From the IMG/VR virus record IMGVR_UViG_3300008261_000001, positions 186,001-250,000 of that record: DNA of 64,000 bases; one strand, written 5' to 3'. Both the position numbers and the translations under genes were made by a program. Each line of letters opens with the position of its first letter. Positions within the stretch are counted from its first letter, which is position 1. Positions 26,036 to 43,690 of this stretch are shown here, piece by piece. The notes under the pieces are model-generated. The model was not told where the DNA came from and ran no database searches. It saw only the letters and a program-made list of their open reading frames with translations.

Positions 26036-26878
26036 TTATCTACGCCCAGGTCTCTCTTCAGGAGCCCTCTTGATGCTAGGGGAGTCCATCCACTCCTCTC
26101 TATACCTCTTGTTGTACTCCTTCTTGTTTTTGGATACGCCTGATCCATAGGGGTTATGGAGGCGATAACAGGTTTCACCCTCACCAGGCTTGCCGACACC
26201 TTCCCAATTGTCGTCTGAGTAGCAATCGGGCTGATTCTTTGGAGCAGGTGGCTTGTTGTAGTTCTTTTGGTCGCCCTTGCCGTCCCAAGTACGACCTGCG
26301 AACATCTCGTCCGCCTCTAACTCGTCCGCCCACATCTCGTCTGAGAAACGCTCTAGGCTCGCCCTCCTTCTCCTTTGTACATCGTCATCGTCATCGTCCT
26401 CGTCATAATCTTCCTCGACATAGTAGTGCATTTTATTTCGTTCATTACTTTCTTCCTCGGCTATCGGTTCTACATAAAGCATCTCTGCGATGTGTTTGGT
26501 AAACCCAGCCACCTTCTTCAGAAACTTAGAACCAACCTCACCTCTGCTCTCGTCATAAACTACTTTGTCTGTGTCTGCGTTTATGATTCGAAACCCATAT
26601 CTGGTACCAGTCTGAAACAGATCAAAAATCACTGCCAGATTTCCGTTAATGACCGTGATTGAAGCACTTGACTTGTTGTGTTTTAGCTCTCGGCTACTTG
26701 AGGGGAACACGATGTCTGTATCTACCCTCTCTTTTAACAGTTTACTTACTTCTTTCTCTAAGAATGCTTGTGTCTTTTTAGCGAGATCCGCGAAAAAAGG
26801 GTTCAAGGATCCCCCTTGCTCAAGGCGGGCGATCCTCATCTCTAACTCATGTAAAACTTCACTGGCTGTTCTTCTCAT
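26036..26878 (-). CDS. RTAS-leader family protein
   Basis: Likely start ATG 26878 (MRRTASEVLHELEMRIARLE) after GGAG RBS. Confidence 0.75.
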   Translation of the reverse strand: MRRTASEVLHELEMRIARLEQGGSLNPFFADLAKKTQAFLEKEVSKLLKERVDTDIVFPSSSRELKHNKSSASITVINGNLAVIFDLFQTGTRYGFRIINADTDKVVYDESRGEVGSKFLKKVAGFTKHIAEMLYVEPIAEEESNERNKMHYYVEEDYDEDDDDDDVQRRRRASLERFSDEMWADELEADEMFAGRTWDGKGDQKNYNKPPAPKNQPDCYSDDNWEGVGKPGEGETCYRLHNPYGSGVSKNKKEYNKRYREEWMDSPSIKRAPEERPGRR

Positions 26879-26885
26879 GTTTATC

Positions 26886-26939
26886 AACTCCATAGAGGGG
26901 GTTGTAGTTTTCCCCTCTATGGAGTTAATAAACAAACTA
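26886..26939 (-). promoter_or_regulatory. TTTAT box plus RBS-occluding hairpin
   Basis: Sense TAGTTTGTTTAT followed by a 15-bp stem AACTCCATAGAGGGG/CCCCTCTATGGAGTT containing GGAG. Confidence 0.7.
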
Positions 26940-27125
26940 TTAGCGAACACGCTCCCAAGAAGCCGTCTTAACCTCGACACGAACAACGCTCGTTCCCTCG
27001 TTATCCTTTAAGAGCTTCTTAGCTTCACGAGCGGTGTTTCTGCTTGTAAAGAAAGTTCCACTTGGGGTGGTGGCTAGGCTCCCGTCTGCAAGCAATATCG
27101 CGTACACATAGGTCGTATCAGACAT
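26940..27125 (-). CDS. hypothetical protein
   Basis: AGGAGGAG RBS; TGGTATA -10. Confidence 0.65.
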   Translation of the reverse strand: MSDTTYVYAILLADGSLATTPSGTFFTSRNTAREAKKLLKDNEGTSVVRVEVKTASWERVR

Positions 27126-27193
27126 CGTGGTCTCCTCCTTGTTGGGTGGTGTGCGGACTCAGAACAATATACCACAAGATATCTGTCTTGTGA

Positions 27194-27619
27194 CTAGCCC
27201 TTATATGCCTTAACTATACGGGCTATCATATCTGCTCGCCTCATCGCACTTGTCTGATACACAACCCCCTCAGATAATGGATACTTTTCTTTTACCTTGT
27301 CGAAGCACTTCATAAGGCAAGACTTTAACAGATGCTTGAACCGAGGGTCACTTACTGGGTCGGATATGTCCCTCCACCGATCCATTTCCATCAGTAAGTC
27401 TCCCTTGTAAGTAATGGATAGTTTTGGTGGGACTTGTGAACTAAGGGTGAGAGTTAATCCATGAACCATTTTTCCGTCTTTTATTATGGATAACCCCTTA
27501 ATCTGTATGTGGCTCGTTCCATCCTCTTTGATCTCTTGTGTCACCCTTCCGCTGTTAGGACTTATCTCCGAGAGCAGATCACGACATATGTCGATCAACG
27601 CAGTGTGGCTCATATCCAT
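27194..27619 (-). CDS. hypothetical protein
   Basis: 141 aa. Confidence 0.6.
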   Translation of the reverse strand: MDMSHTALIDICRDLLSEISPNSGRVTQEIKEDGTSHIQIKGLSIIKDGKMVHGLTLTLSSQVPPKLSITYKGDLLMEMDRWRDISDPVSDPRFKHLLKSCLMKCFDKVKEKYPLSEGVVYQTSAMRRADMIARIVKAYKG

Positions 27620-27622
27620 ATC

Positions 27623-41613: not shown

Positions 41614-41677
41614 TCTTTAGCCCTCCTTATACTCCCTTATGTACATAAGGTGGAGGGTTATAAATGGATAACTAAAG

Positions 41678-41857
41678 CTAGTATCCTCCCGTCTTGAACC
41701 AACCGCTTCCTTTTAGGATAAACGAACTCTGGCTGATGATCCTTTCGGTTTCACCTGAGCATTTTTCACAAACGGGTGGTGCGTCCTCAAACTTCTGTTG
41801 TTTGGTTTGGGTGTGTTGGCAGTTTGTGTCTTTGCACTTAAATGAGTATCTGGGCAT
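41678..41857 (-). CDS. FmdB-family zinc-ribbon protein (59 aa, not in ORF track)
   Basis: MPRYSFKCKDTNC..PVCEKCSG..RIISQSSFILKGSGWF; TAATG coupling. Confidence 0.88.
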   Translation of the reverse strand: MPRYSFKCKDTNCQHTQTKQQKFEDAPPVCEKCSGETERIISQSSFILKGSGWFKTGGY

Positions 41858-42162
41858 TATTTCTTTTCCTTATCGTTCTTGGGTTGGGTTTTTGTGATCT
41901 CAGAGGAGCGGATATTTCTCAATATTCTGTCTTGGTGTGAGATAAGGTTTTCCAAATCTCTTCTTACCCTTCTTAATAGGGCAGTATCCAAGTTCGCGTT
42001 CTTATACTTAGACCTACTTAGGACTGAGGTTATTCGCATAAGAGCGATGCTCAAGTCTTCAGTGTCCTTTTTCACCTCTTTTAAGGGATCGTCTGACATG
42101 GTTAAAACTCCAGATAAGAATATCATCACCGCATTATACTTGTTTGTAAGGGAGTACTTCAA
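41857..42162 (-). CDS. hypothetical coiled-coil protein (start probably 42099)
   Basis: GGAG RBS before MSDDPL. Confidence 0.6.
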   Translation of the reverse strand: MKYSLTNKYNAVMIFLSGVLTMSDDPLKEVKKDTEDLSIALMRITSVLSRSKYKNANLDTALLRRVRRDLENLISHQDRILRNIRSSEITKTQPKNDKEKK

Positions 42163-42163
42163 T

Positions 42164-42565
42164 ATGACAAGCAGTTCGATTGCTCCAGTGGATAAGACAC
42201 AACCTCATTTCTGTATGTACACGATGGGCGAGCAGAAAAAGGATTGTTTTAACATCGAACTTGAGAAGCCCACTTGTTTATCCAATCTCGACCCTATTAG
42301 TTGGGGGGATTGGGCGAATATGTCTCTCCAAAACAACCCCCTCTCCCACGGTTGTTTATTTTGGGGGGTGGTACATTTAAACTTCCCCACAGAGACACCC
42401 AATCCCCATGCCTTTTTAGCTATTTACGAGAGGGGTAAGCCTGTTATTTGTTTTTACTCCACCCTCGGTTTTAGCGAGCCCTTGAAGTTCTTGCCGTCTT
42501 CTTATTTATTCCCCGAGGGATGTTTTGATTTTGTAGACCACCTCTTAGAGTTCGCCCCTCAGTAA
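42164..42565 (+). CDS. hypothetical protein
   Basis: GGGAG RBS before ATG 42164. Confidence 0.55.
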   Translation: MTSSSIAPVDKTQPHFCMYTMGEQKKDCFNIELEKPTCLSNLDPISWGDWANMSLQNNPLSHGCLFWGVVHLNFPTETPNPHAFLAIYERGKPVICFYSTLGFSEPLKFLPSSYLFPEGCFDFVDHLLEFAPQ

Positions 42566-42568
42566 GTT

Positions 42569-43690
42569 TCAACCCCTAGTGGAAGGGTTCCAGTTTCCAA
42601 TACGGGCATCGTAGTGCTTAATCTCTAGTTCTAATGAGTGTATATGGTTCTCAATAACCCCTGCTTTTCTGAGTTTCTCACTCTTAACTGTTATGACTTC
42701 TTCCCTAGCCGCCTCTAGTTCTAACCTCAGCTTCAAAGATCTTTTTTCTTTGATCGTATCCTCCAGAAGCCTCTTTACGCCCTGTAGTCCTTCAACGGAG
42801 TCCTCTACGGGAGGGAACCCTGTACCGAAACAACCCGTAGAGGTTGTCCAATGCCTTATTATTTTATATCCGTGCTTTCGAATCATCTTATTAGCTGTGT
42901 TGACGGACCATACTTGAAAACAACCAGGACAAGTCCCTTCGTCTGCTCTCAATGTAGGTTTCTCGGTTGTGCCTACAAATGAGCTACCCAAATAACTCTT
43001 TGCCTTTTCCACTCCGCCTTCCTTCACCACAAAGGCGATGAGCTTACTCAAGTCGAAGGATTGCAAACTATCCGTAATAGATAAGGTTAACTTAACCTTA
43101 GAAGATCCGCTAGATACAATCAGATTTTTAACGCCCTCTAAATAAGAGACATCATACCGTACATAAGTACTCCCAGATACTTCAAAAATATCAACCTTCG
43201 AGGGGTCGAACACAAAGGCTATTTTTCCAAAAGGGATGCTCTTGGGCTTTGATCTGCTTACTGAAATGTTTGGGTCTTGTTCGTGTGTCCTTATTATGTG
43301 GCTTACAGCGGAGTTGGCACTCGCATTGTCCACCCTGTTCCTAAAAGGGATTGTATGTTGATCATGTTGTAACGACAATCTATTGAAATCTATGTTGGGG
43401 TACAAACTTGGGAGTTGCTGATACAATCTGTTTATCAAATCCGACACTTCTTGTCTTTGTGCGACTTGTGTAGAATCTTCGGTTTTAACCCCGTATCCCA
43501 AAACGGTGAGAGCCTCTTGAAAGTGGTTTAGATTACCAACACTTGGCATCTTACTCGTCCTTGAGTGGTTTGCCAATGCTTGTATCATACCCTGTGCAGA
43601 TGGGGATAGGCTATCACTAGCCTTACGCTCTAAACGAGCTAAACGATACTCAAGATTTCTTAAAACTTCGGATGCTGTTCTCATATTCAT
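42569..43690 (-). CDS. RTAS-leader family protein with C-terminal Zn finger
   Basis: MRTASEVLRNLEYRLARLERKAS; GTCPGC..KHGY..GCFG. Confidence 0.75.
   Translation of the reverse strand: MNMRTASEVLRNLEYRLARLERKASDSLSPSAQGMIQALANHSRTSKMPSVGNLNHFQEALTVLGYGVKTEDSTQVAQRQEVSDLINRLYQQLPSLYPNIDFNRLSLQHDQHTIPFRNRVDNASANSAVSHIIRTHEQDPNISVSRSKPKSIPFGKIAFVFDPSKVDIFEVSGSTYVRYDVSYLEGVKNLIVSSGSSKVKLTLSITDSLQSFDLSKLIAFVVKEGGVEKAKSYLGSSFVGTTEKPTLRADEGTCPGCFQVWSVNTANKMIRKHGYKIIRHWTTSTGCFGTGFPPVEDSVEGLQGVKRLLEDTIKEKRSLKLRLELEAAREEVITVKSEKLRKAGVIENHIHSLELEIKHYDARIGNWNPSTRG

Follow-up and report, generated by a model that had tools for sequence, protein, structure and literature searches.

The window analysed here, 64 kb of DNA, is part of a 290-kb contig (IMG/VR) from an uncultivated jumbo phage resembling phage G. 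Six of its open reading frames (ORFs), starting at 26878(−), 28384(+), 29877(−), 33745(−), 38901(−) and 43684(−), begin with versions of one short peptide, which we refer to as the tag. When all six frames of the window were searched with the expression R[LIVM]A[RK]LE, exactly six matches were returned, each at the N-terminus of an ORF. We name the ORFs by their start positions. The true starts of two of them are the ATGs with Shine-Dalgarno (SD) spacing at 26878 and 43684, and not the positions 26986 and 43690 at which the longer frames open. T26878 (26036–26878, − strand; 280 aa) carries the tag MRRTASEVLHELEMRIARLEQGGS, encoded at 26807–26878. T28384 (28384–29139, +; 251 aa) carries MRKATDILRSLNTRLARLERKAS, the most diverged of the full-length tags, and T29877 (29140–29877, −; 245 aa) carries MNHRLQALEMRVARLEKKSS, which is shortened, as the preliminary description had it, by the loss of the first five residues. 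The remaining three are T33745 (32975–33745, −; 256 aa; MRTASDVLRSLEARIARLEGGRTAS), T38901 (38581–38901, −; 106 aa; MRTASEVLRSLEARIARLEQSKVAS) and T43684 (42569–43684, −; 371 aa; MRTASEVLRNLEYRLARLERKAS). The tags end in RKAS (T28384 and T43684), KVAS (T38901), RTAS (T33745) and KKSS (T29877), all in agreement with the earlier reading, and in QGGS (T26878).

The bodies that follow the tags have nothing visible in common. Pairwise BLASTP comparison of the six revealed no similarity (best E 0.08), which bears out the original claim of near-identical leaders on otherwise unlike proteins. Pfam and PHROG searches of the bodies returned nothing significant, and fold searches with two bodies found no function. 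T43684 has tagged homologues in three other loci (L019, L116 and L067) at 28–30% identity. The body of T26878 includes an acidic MWADELEADEMFA motif that is found, too, in the scaffold-like protein of the head module described below.

A promoter-like motif, TAATAGTTTnTTTAT, lies upstream of all but one of the six genes. The exception is T29877, whose upstream region is different and has no match to the promoter matrix. Strong 5′UTR hairpins (ΔG −18 to −32 kcal/mol, z −6 to −10) accompany the motif at three genes: T26878, where TAATAGTTTGTTTAT at the 26942 end of the element (26882–26942, −) is followed by a 19-bp stem-loop with a GGAG SD inside its 3′ arm (ΔG −31.8 kcal/mol, z −9.8); T38901, where the best promoter match, TAATAGTTTATTTATACTCC, is followed by a long stem-loop that includes the SD (38908–38978, −; ΔG −32.1, z −7.0); and T43684, where TGATAATCTTTTTAT is followed by another that does so (43691–43737, −; ΔG −17.9 kcal/mol, z −6.2). 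T33745 is served by TTGTAGTCTATTTAT and a stem-loop (33749–33813, −; ΔG −18.9 kcal/mol, z −3.3), and T28384 by TTATAGTATTTTAAT, a weak hairpin (z −0.9) and AAGGAG (28325–28383, +). The proposal that at least five genes sit behind the same promoter-hairpin element holds for the promoter-like site; the hairpin is strong at fewer genes. The sequence GGGGTTGGGTTAA, said to be common to the leaders of T33745 and T38901, is present at both (33764–33776, within the stem-loop sequence TTAACCCAACCCC, and 38920–38932), but it sits in the 5′UTR hairpin, upstream of the start codons, rather than in leader coding sequence.

The promoter is not specific to tagged genes, for the only other strong match in the window, at 48942–48963 (+), precedes an untagged ORF (49007–49390). 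The element is the clade's general promoter with a 5′ stem-loop. The promoter occurs upstream of the decoration–capsid protein operon, in this genome and in relatives, and upstream of many untagged genes, including, in relatives, those for a glutamine synthetase and for signal-peptide proteins. The preliminary description had envisaged a cassette of promoter, ribosome-binding site and tag that recruits arbitrary genes. The tag is indeed portable, as described next, but the promoter-hairpin is no dedicated part of such a cassette.

Architecture and portability of the tag

The tag consensus is M-R-(R)-T-A-S-E-V-L-R-x-L-E-x-R-[IVL]-A-R-L-E, followed by a junction, [RKG][QRK][AST][SA]. Judged from its sequence, the leader is a self-contained module of approximately 24 residues in three parts: T-A-S-E, a predicted helix N-capping box; V-L-R-x-L-E-x-R-[IV]-A-R-L-E, a predicted four-turn amphipathic helix; and the short junction, after which conservation ends. 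Among 234 unique leaders, information content is 3–4 bits per position across 20 residues, 1.3–2.2 bits at the four junction residues and approximately 0.3 bit beyond them. In the AlphaFold model of tag131, one of the tagged proteins of the head module, the tag is a helix (pLDDT ~82) and the linker is of lower confidence. The R-T-A-S seen at the junction also begins the tag, there as part of the T-x-x-E capping box. Sec or Tat signal-peptide features are absent from the tag, which is charged throughout (six R and four E in 24 residues) and has no hydrophobic run. Some tags are internal, and lack the Met.

It is the peptide that is conserved, not the DNA. Across nine tag copies of this genome pS is 0.59 and pN is 0.18 (pN/pS 0.30), with synonymous sites saturated, and the earlier observation that codons differ synonymously between copies is therefore sound. 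A profile of the leader, the check suggested earlier, matched 548 protein clusters (50% identity); in the best 150 of these, the tag is at residue 1 in approximately 95%. A set of 244 tagged proteins fell into 168 unrelated body clusters, nearly all of them ORFans, and 146 body representatives gave four stray Pfam matches, each in a single protein and with E > 1e-4, and five matches in PHROG. Bodies also occur with and without the tag. One family (phrog_9437-type) is both tagged and untagged at 62–80% identity, the untagged form being 98–101 aa long and the tagged forms having linkers of 0 to ~50 aa. Homologues of T29877 (P0194, P0195 and L027:2292-2936) are without the tag, and in the T28384 orthologue at locus L048 the tag helix is deleted. 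That the tag is separable and portable is well supported.

Might the peptide nevertheless be functionless, its first ~20 codons hitch-hiking with a recombining promoter-UTR-start cassette that confers high expression? In many relatives the tagged genes have in common a closely similar UTR, CATAAGTGATCTCTTTAACCTTAAC..ATGGAGAA, which is more specific than the promoter; L002a and L002b arose by tandem duplication, recently, and their upstream DNA is identical; and the hexapeptide MRR[ST]A[ST] occurs alone on other genes behind the clade promoter. But the peptide is kept despite saturation of synonymous sites and although the UTRs of this genome are very unlike those of its relatives, it persists on 548 clusters with a sharp conservation boundary, and internal tags lie far from any start codon. 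We consider hitch-hiking extremely improbable.

The junction [KR]xAS may be a protease site, or may do no more than cap the helix at its C-terminal end and open the linker. A particular form of processing would be that of double-glycine leaders, with the tag cut, and the protein perhaps exported, by a C39-like cysteine peptidase encoded at 44072–44677. This ORF, two genes away from T43684, matches the whole Peptidase_C39_2 profile (E 1.1e-6, above the Pfam cut-off); the tag is, moreover, an amphipathic helical leader, and in the L006 copy, as in T33745 and T26878, the residues after the helix are GG. A conserved GG is not found, however, in the 234 leaders (G is only 19% at +1 and 6% at +2), the bodies are 100–430 aa and hence not peptides, and no ABC transporter was seen. 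Since the C39-like gene adjoins one for an M15 peptidase, it may encode a lysis enzyme instead, and we give this explanation hardly any credence.

Distribution and the head module

A degenerate DNA pattern of the tag matched more than 120 IMG/VR stretches on approximately 60 contigs of up to 375 kb, single contigs having at least 18, at least 21 and at least 12 copies. In bacterial and archaeal genomes, 596 Gb in total, it matched nothing. The tag is confined to a clade of phage-G-like large phages, which carry 10–20 or more copies per genome. The tag is absent from a sister phage, LR745208.1, whose capsid protein (MCP) is 89.7% identical. LR745208.1 has instead a different leader, MTTLRSKLIRLAHENP...LLPLLKEA, at 11 places, as expected if such labels are lineage-specific; weaker copies of that leader occur in phages with the tag described here.

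At least five further tagged genes lie elsewhere on the contig, four of them in the head module, where they adjoin the portal gene or come shortly after the capsid gene. The module runs TerL, portal, tag160, tag165, several genes, protease, an acidic scaffold-like protein, decoration protein, MCP, p222 (with an internal tag) and tag131. In T4, the order is portal, small core proteins, protease, scaffold and MCP, and the module here mirrors it. In many relatives, too, tagged genes come after the portal and after the MCP. Among phages of the tag-bearing clade, MCPs are 95–98% identical, whereas scaffold and protease are 46–64% identical, and the near-invariant MCP is thus a candidate receptor for a near-invariant peptide. 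Of two candidate proteases, the one in the head module matches phrog_18299 and the other is of ClpP type.

On balance we lean towards the view that the tag is an address label, one that docks unrelated small proteins onto the prohead for enclosure in the capsid. Its partner would be some highly conserved part of the prohead during assembly, for which the MCP (on its inner face), the portal and the scaffolding core are candidates, and the enclosed proteins would probably exit with the DNA at infection, like the internal proteins of T4. Tagged genes would be expressed alongside structural genes from the clade's standard promoter, TAGTTTATTTAT, with the SD located in the 3′ arm of the 5′ stem-loop. 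Particles of phage G reportedly include many non-structural proteins (bioRxiv 10.1101/2024.12.16.628780). The case for virion cargo loading is only circumstantial: synteny with head genes, a promoter common with the capsid operon, and the logic of the T4 leader. We infer from these prohead binding, packaging, removal of the tag by a head protease, injection, and a role for the bodies as anti-defence or takeover effectors.

Several observations temper this reading. Six of the tagged genes (at least 11 in all) lie outside the head module, among genes for DNA metabolism and homing endonucleases, and because the promoter is general, co-expression with capsid genes is weak evidence. The tag profile found no related segment in scaffold, portal or MCP, and the internal, Met-less tags and the lack of homology to T-even leaders weigh in the same direction. 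The junction motif occurs at 3 per 494 aa in the scaffold-like protein and at ~9 per 18.7 kaa in the ORFs of the window, a modest enrichment; the motif is loosely defined, and this we count against capsid targeting.

The genes outside structural modules would suit a different role, in which the tag is a docking or oligomerization helix for a non-capsid partner and the tagged proteins act, unpackaged, in the infected cell. The partner could be a phage-encoded chaperone, the adaptor of a ClpP-type protease (with the tag as a timed degron), or some assembly or compartment inside the cell. Like a peptide ligand, the helix is short and amphipathic, with conservation at every position; internal copies occur; and tagged genes have a ClpP homologue encoded nearby, both here and in several related genomes. 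However, head-maturation proteases are themselves commonly of ClpP type (PHROG matches), neither ClpX nor an adaptor gene was seen beside ClpP in L011, adjacency of tagged genes to portal and capsid genes is conserved, and tagged genes use the capsid-operon promoter. We judge a non-capsid partner unlikely, if the most serious competitor. Lower still stands the idea of a common decoration anchor, by which the proteins would be borne on the outside of the capsid and not injected. The capsids of jumbo phages have many decoration sites, and the very high conservation of the MCP suits a peptide that binds it; yet a separate decoration-protein homologue already precedes the MCP gene, 10–20 different, fast-turnover small ORFans per genome suit effectors better than a surface lattice, and the 146 bodies include no Ig-like or lectin-like domain. 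We find this very unlikely.

If capsid targeting is what the tag does, its 24 residues single out hundreds of protein families in uncultivated giant phages as likely to be packaged and injected. ORFans make up nearly the whole set, which could include many anti-defence and host-takeover functions; gain and loss of the tag on near-identical bodies would be a route by which a phage could acquire or shed cargo. The internal-protein strategy of T4 would have arisen independently in another capsid lineage, and a small, detachable helix able to load a very large capsid would be a useful tool for work on protein encapsidation in phage-bacterium systems. A bolder extension, and one we rate as improbable, is that phage-G-like jumbo phages sort proteins by interchangeable, lineage-specific labels, such as the tag and the LR745208.1 leader, that bind the HK97-fold capsid protein directly, in the manner of encapsulins. 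Were that true, the set of packaged, injected effectors of uncultivated giant phages could be read from sequence alone, and cargo loading in phages would be linked mechanistically to encapsulins. Should capsid targeting fail altogether, a near-invariant peptide on ~550 unrelated clusters will still want explanation.

Comparison with known systems

The closest parallel is with the T-even phages, in which an N-terminal leader for capsid targeting is all that the internal proteins have in common (PMC3012670, PMC12373910). There, too (Ip1–3, Alt and the variable ip loci), a conserved leader is the sole similarity among unrelated, fast-evolving small proteins, present in several copies per genome and with conserved 5′ expression signals. 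The genes for gp67 and gp68 of T4 are located between those for the portal and the protease, as are small tagged genes here. The resemblance is analogous only, as the leaders have no sequence homology: a tblastn search of 50,697 phage records, among which T-even phages are expected, with the tag and with T38901 as queries gave no match to the tag. The T4 leader is ~10 residues long, whereas the tag is ~24, with a capped four-turn helix, and copies of the tag, some of them internal or tandem, outnumber those in T-even genomes. The head here is of the phage G type, with phrog_18299 and ClpP-type proteases rather than the gp21 type of T4; no head-module protease has a gp21-family Pfam match, and the gp21-type site, L/I-x-E, is not formed at the conserved Glu positions of the tag, where in the 234 leaders the residue two before is S/N/D/E or R.

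In the jumbo phages phiKZ and SPN3US, many head-internal or ejected proteins have N-terminal regions that are removed at maturation (PMC5694885, PMC10052503). The likeness is that of jumbo phages with many head-internal proteins, which the tagged proteins would be here, but those propeptides are not one conserved, portable sequence as the tag is. The phiKZ-type cleavage motif is S/A/G-x-E. No such motif marks the boundary of the tag; two residues before the first L-E, the 234 leaders have N (33%), S (33%), D (18%) or E (12%).

The mobile regulatory cassettes of T4-type phages known as PeSLs are repeats of a promoter and a stem-loop that flank variable accessory ORFs and could mediate shuffling. 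They differ from the arrangement here, in which the stem-loop lies in the 5′UTR downstream of the promoter and contains the SD, and the element serves structural operons as well. Finally, the cargo-loading peptides of encapsulins are short, occur on unrelated cargo and bind the luminal face of an HK97-fold shell. They are usually C-terminal and extended, with another motif, and their genes adjoin that of the shell; the tag, in contrast, is a helix at the N-terminus, and its genes are dispersed along a viral genome of 290 kb. The most conserved candidate receptor here is the HK97-fold MCP, and its co-conservation with the tag is no more than suggestive.

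A shared leader on otherwise unrelated proteins

Six open reading frames (ORFs) in the window begin with nearly the same helical peptide of about 24 residues, the 'tag', followed by a short junction and a 'body'. We name them by their start positions: T26878 (minus strand; leader MRRTASEVLHELEMRIARLEQGGS), T28384 (plus; MRKATDILRSLNTRLARLERKAS), T29877 (minus; MNHRLQALEMRVARLEKKSS), T33745 (minus; MRTASDVLRSLEARIARLEGGRTAS), T38901 (minus; MRTASEVLRSLEARIARLEQSKVAS) and T43684 (minus; MRTASEVLRNLEYRLARLERKAS). A six-frame regular-expression search of the 64-kb window for R[LIVM]A[RK]LE gives exactly six matches, all of them ~14–20 residues from an ORF start. 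The bodies, 106–371 aa long, have no pairwise similarity by BLASTP (best E 0.08), and Pfam and PHROGs return nothing significant for any of them. When the first 45 residues of 108 ORFs of the source genome are compared all against all, the tagged set is the sole linked group besides one set of full-length paralogues. Synonymous sites among nine tag copies of this genome are near saturation (pS 0.59) while pN stays at 0.18, and so the peptide is the conserved entity. The preliminary description had claimed near-identical leaders, bodies with no visible similarity, and conservation of peptide rather than codons; these observations are confirmed, and they widen from six genes to a large family of tags, apparently not previously described.

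The consensus of 234 unique leaders is M-R-R-[TS]-A-S-E-[VI]-[LI]-R-x-L-E-x-R-[VI]-A-R-L-E-[RKG]-[QRK]-[AST]-[SA]. Information content is 3–4 bits per position in the tag, 1.3–2.2 over the four junction residues, and ~0.3 beyond. T-A-S-E looks like a helix N-capping box, and a 3–4 spacing puts the hydrophobic residues on a single face. In the AlphaFold model of tag131, a tagged 131-aa protein encoded downstream of the major capsid protein (MCP) gene, the tag is a helix (pLDDT ~82); confidence drops in the linker after it, and the body is modelled as a compact alpha/beta unit. Conservation extends to all positions of the tag, beyond the hydrophobic face, which suits a peptide that binds one particular partner more than it suits a generic coiled coil. 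That partner might lie outside the capsid, the tag being a docking helix for it, a reading that we rate below the capsid targeting favored by the gene order and capsid conservation described later.

A protease might cut at the junction, [RK]x[AS]S, but the junction may also be a helix C-cap only, and R-T-A-S opens the tag too. Its enrichment in the scaffold-like protein and protease of the head module is modest to weak, too slight for us to rely on it as a cleavage motif. The tag does not match the T4 or phiKZ cleavage motifs. A tag-profile search of the scaffold, portal, MCP and a 1062-aa head-module protein found no tag-like segment, and the N-terminus of the last, considered as tag-like, was dropped on this account. 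Variant arrangements also occur. A hexapeptide, MRR[ST]A[ST], without the helix begins several further genes that have the promoter described below, on related contigs (L112 near 2724, L016 near 11605 and L044 near 1952); protein P0022 has a tandem double tag; and internal tags without Met are present in P0175, P0176 and at locus L049.

Distribution and portability

The preliminary description had suggested scanning relatives with a profile of the leader. Such a profile, built from nine leaders and run against 1.84 billion representative proteins, matches 548 clusters at E ≤ 0.001; among the best 150 of these, the leader is at residues 1–5 in ~95%, and lengths are 40–370 aa. A degenerate DNA pattern encoding ASE[VI]xxxLExR[VI]ARLE finds, as a lower bound, >120 matching stretches on ~60 IMG/VR contigs of up to 375 kb. 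The same pattern has zero matches in 596 Gb of bacterial and archaeal genomes (a chance control), and the tag is therefore virus-only. By HMM scan of related loci, single contigs of 375, 173 and 206 kb carry at least 18, 21 and 12 tagged genes, respectively. No cultured phage with the tag was found among GenBank phages; a literature text search for the peptide gave nothing relevant; and jumbo-phage reviews and the phage G multi-omics paper describe no such leader.

The bodies are diverse. BLASTP (E < 1e-3) sorts 244 tagged proteins into 168 body clusters, 121 of them singletons, and 146 tagged representatives yield four stray Pfam matches (one protein each, E > 1e-4) and five PHROG matches. 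One of the bodies, that of tag131 (phrog_9437), was searched without its tag. Bodies of this type occur bare (98–101 aa), fused directly to the tag, joined to it by a linker of up to ~50 residues, or in proteins where an additional N-terminal domain comes first and the tag is in the middle. They are 62–80% identical across tagged and untagged forms, and a 122-kb phage that is not related encodes an untagged copy next to its PhoH and Thy1 genes. The tag is also missing from homologues of T29877, and an orthologue of T28384 keeps MRTAT and KAS and has lost the helix. Such tagged and untagged variants indicate that the tag is gained and lost as a unit.

AlphaFold models of tag131 (pLDDT 86; searched against the PDB) and T29877 (pLDDT 77; PDB and BFVD) have no match at E ≤ 0.001. 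The best lead for T29877, a DarT-like ADP-ribosyltransferase fold, has an E of only 0.067 and is not relied on. Separately, an acidic motif, MWAD[DE]LEADE[LM], is common to the scaffold-like protein of the head module, a 487-aa window ORF (8119–9582, minus; 67% identity over 43 aa) and the T26878 body (26036–26878, minus).

Expression signals and neighboring genes

A promoter position matrix built from tagged genes finds sites in the window upstream of five of the six, and of one untagged gene (48942). Its core, TAG[TA][TC]nnT[TC]TAT, occurs 328 times in 1.04 Mb of related loci, and at least 115 of these sites precede tagged genes. The remainder precede untagged genes, among them tail-like genes, a gene for glutamine synthetase and, in the source genome as in its relatives, the decoration–MCP operon; this is therefore the general promoter of the clade, probably a late promoter, and is not specific to the tag. 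Strong 5' stem-loops (dG −18 to −32 kcal/mol, z −3.3 to −9.8) follow it at four of the tagged genes in the window; GGAG is in the 3' arm, and the inner stems vary in sequence and keep their pairing. An Rfam scan of the window returned only tRNAs, with no known family over these hairpins. The promoter-hairpin had been placed ahead of at least five tagged genes; the matrix agrees for the promoter, and the strong stem-loops number four. Likewise, GGGGTTGGGTTAA, reported as common to the 33745 and 38901 leaders, is present at both and lies in the untranslated regions (UTRs), outside the coding leader. In the interpretation first offered, tag and promoter-hairpin together formed a candidate virion cargo-loading system. 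That interpretation finds support in part: the portable tag is established by the 168 body clusters and by the phrog_9437 body with and without it, and the promoter-hairpin proves to be a general expression signal.

A more specific UTR sequence is common to the tagged genes of most relatives, which makes cassette-like spread of UTR and tag together plausible. The tag might accordingly be read as a hitch-hiker in such a spreading cassette, an explanation that we again rate below capsid targeting. The conserved UTR, CATAAGTGATCTCTTTAACCTTAAC..ATGGAGAA, lies 5' of tagged genes at many loci (e.g. L124:1520–1570 and L049:7313–7363), and many copies have, further upstream, a TTCTCCAT that pairs with the Shine-Dalgarno-bearing ATGGAGAA. 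Part of the UTR sequence, TTTAACCTTAAC, resembles the epsilon translational enhancer of T7 gene 10.

The tagged genes are interspersed with auxiliary genes (38989–40035, 40720–41613, 27623–28300 and 29939–30865, all minus). They include a short glutamine synthetase of 348 aa, a weak match to class III nucleotide cyclases, a metallophosphatase and, judged by eye, an ATP-dependent DNA ligase; the TAGTTTATTTAT promoter is also upstream of the glutamine synthetase gene in relatives. The region 33846–37689 (minus) seems, by eye, to hold many homing endonucleases and inteins: a 446-aa repeat-rich endonuclease-like ORF (33846–35186), an ORF with a Hint-like start (35286–35972), an HNH-like ORF (35969–36913) and the ORF upstream of it (36913–37689). 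Three ~405-aa paralogues with a weak DNA methylase match (N6_N4_Mtase) occur in this one genome, at 31753–32973 (plus) in the window and at 1314–2525 and 4969–6189 of L006, elsewhere on the contig.

A Peptidase_C39_2-like cysteine peptidase is encoded at 44072–44677 (minus; Pfam E 1.1e-6, above cut-off), beside a coiled-coil protein (45171–45839) and an M15 peptidase (45836–46279). Its homologues in relatives, 348–444 aa long, are behind the general promoter. It may belong to a cassette for lysis or be a candidate for cleaving leaders; that the tag is a leader cut by this enzyme we consider less probable than capsid targeting.

Head genes and proposed capsid targeting

The source contig, IMGVR_UViG_3300008261_000001, is 290,179 bp long, and the window (186001–250000) encodes a family A DNA polymerase, a Baseplate_J protein and nine tRNAs (Val, two Asn, Arg, two Leu, Met, Lys and Thr; 220–294, 809–881, 10554–11282 and 46836–47344). 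The MCP gene is outside the window on the same contig (phrog_2522, E 2.7e-51). Its product shares 89.7% identity with the MCP of LR745208.1, an uncultured phage of 485 kb, 47% with that of Tunturiibacter phage Tunturi_5 and 39% with that of Bacillus phage G, identities by which the virus is classed as a phage-G-like jumbo myovirus. The head module of Tunturi_5, a cultured relative, has no shared leader.

The head module of the source genome (L011; contig positions 141,666–164,854) encodes, in order, the large terminase, the portal, two tagged tandem paralogues of 160 and 165 aa, proteins of 203 and 1062 aa, a 461-aa head-maturation protease (phrog_18299, E 5.5e-17; no match in a PDB sequence search), an acidic 494-aa scaffold-like protein (L011 14608–16092), a 201-aa decoration-protein homologue, the 292-aa MCP, a 222-aa protein with an internal tag, and tag131; a ClpP-type protease follows ~3 kb beyond. 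Another tagged gene, for a 107-aa protein, is at ~278 kb, and the ~96 kb read of this 290-kb contig holds at least 11 tagged genes. Tagged genes directly follow the portal gene in L087, L107, L114 and the source genome, one to four follow the MCP gene in many contigs, and they have the same promoter as the capsid operon. Within the tag-bearing clade the MCP is 95–98% identical (compared at L013, L025, L027, L043, L051, L095, L099, L108, L123 and L129), an unusually constrained capsid protein, whereas identity is 75–80% for terminase, ~84% for portal, 57–64% for protease and 46–59% for scaffold. A peptide that hardly varies is thus matched by a candidate receptor that hardly varies. An external capsid anchor could use the same receptor; we rate it, too, below capsid targeting.

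LR745208.1 (MCP 90% identical to that of the source genome, TerL 64%, scaffold 38%) was searched for the tag, and none was found. It carries a different leader, MTTLRSKLIRLAHENPALRPQLLPLLKEA, in eleven places (sites in its locus L130 at 18716–19120 and 26343–27398), a pattern to be expected of address labels that are specific to lineages. Eight of its 26 specific MCP substitutions are within the first 42 residues, a clustering that offers a weak hint only of capsid targeting. Weaker leaders of the MTTLRSKLIRLAHENPALRPQLLPLLKEA type occur in contigs with our tag (L022 near 5454, L121 near 5781, and L060), and two more LR745208.1 head-module proteins (L130 13116–13751 and 15210–15875) share a different N-terminal region of ~50 aa.

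Cargo loading by capsid targeting is the best-supported reading of the tag, and we give it roughly an even chance; tagged proteins would then be packaged, cleaved and injected. Many non-structural proteins have been reported in phage G particles (bioRxiv 10.1101/2024.12.16.628780). Among known systems the nearest is the capsid-targeting leader of the T-even phages, to which GenBank phage searches found no homology of the tag. T-even internal proteins are unrelated, fast-evolving and injected, and all that they have in common is an N-terminal leader, which brings them into the core of the prohead (PMC3012670, PMC12373910). The tagged bodies here are, similarly, small ORFans with high turnover, and the tag would load such unrelated small proteins into the prohead much as the T-even leader does.
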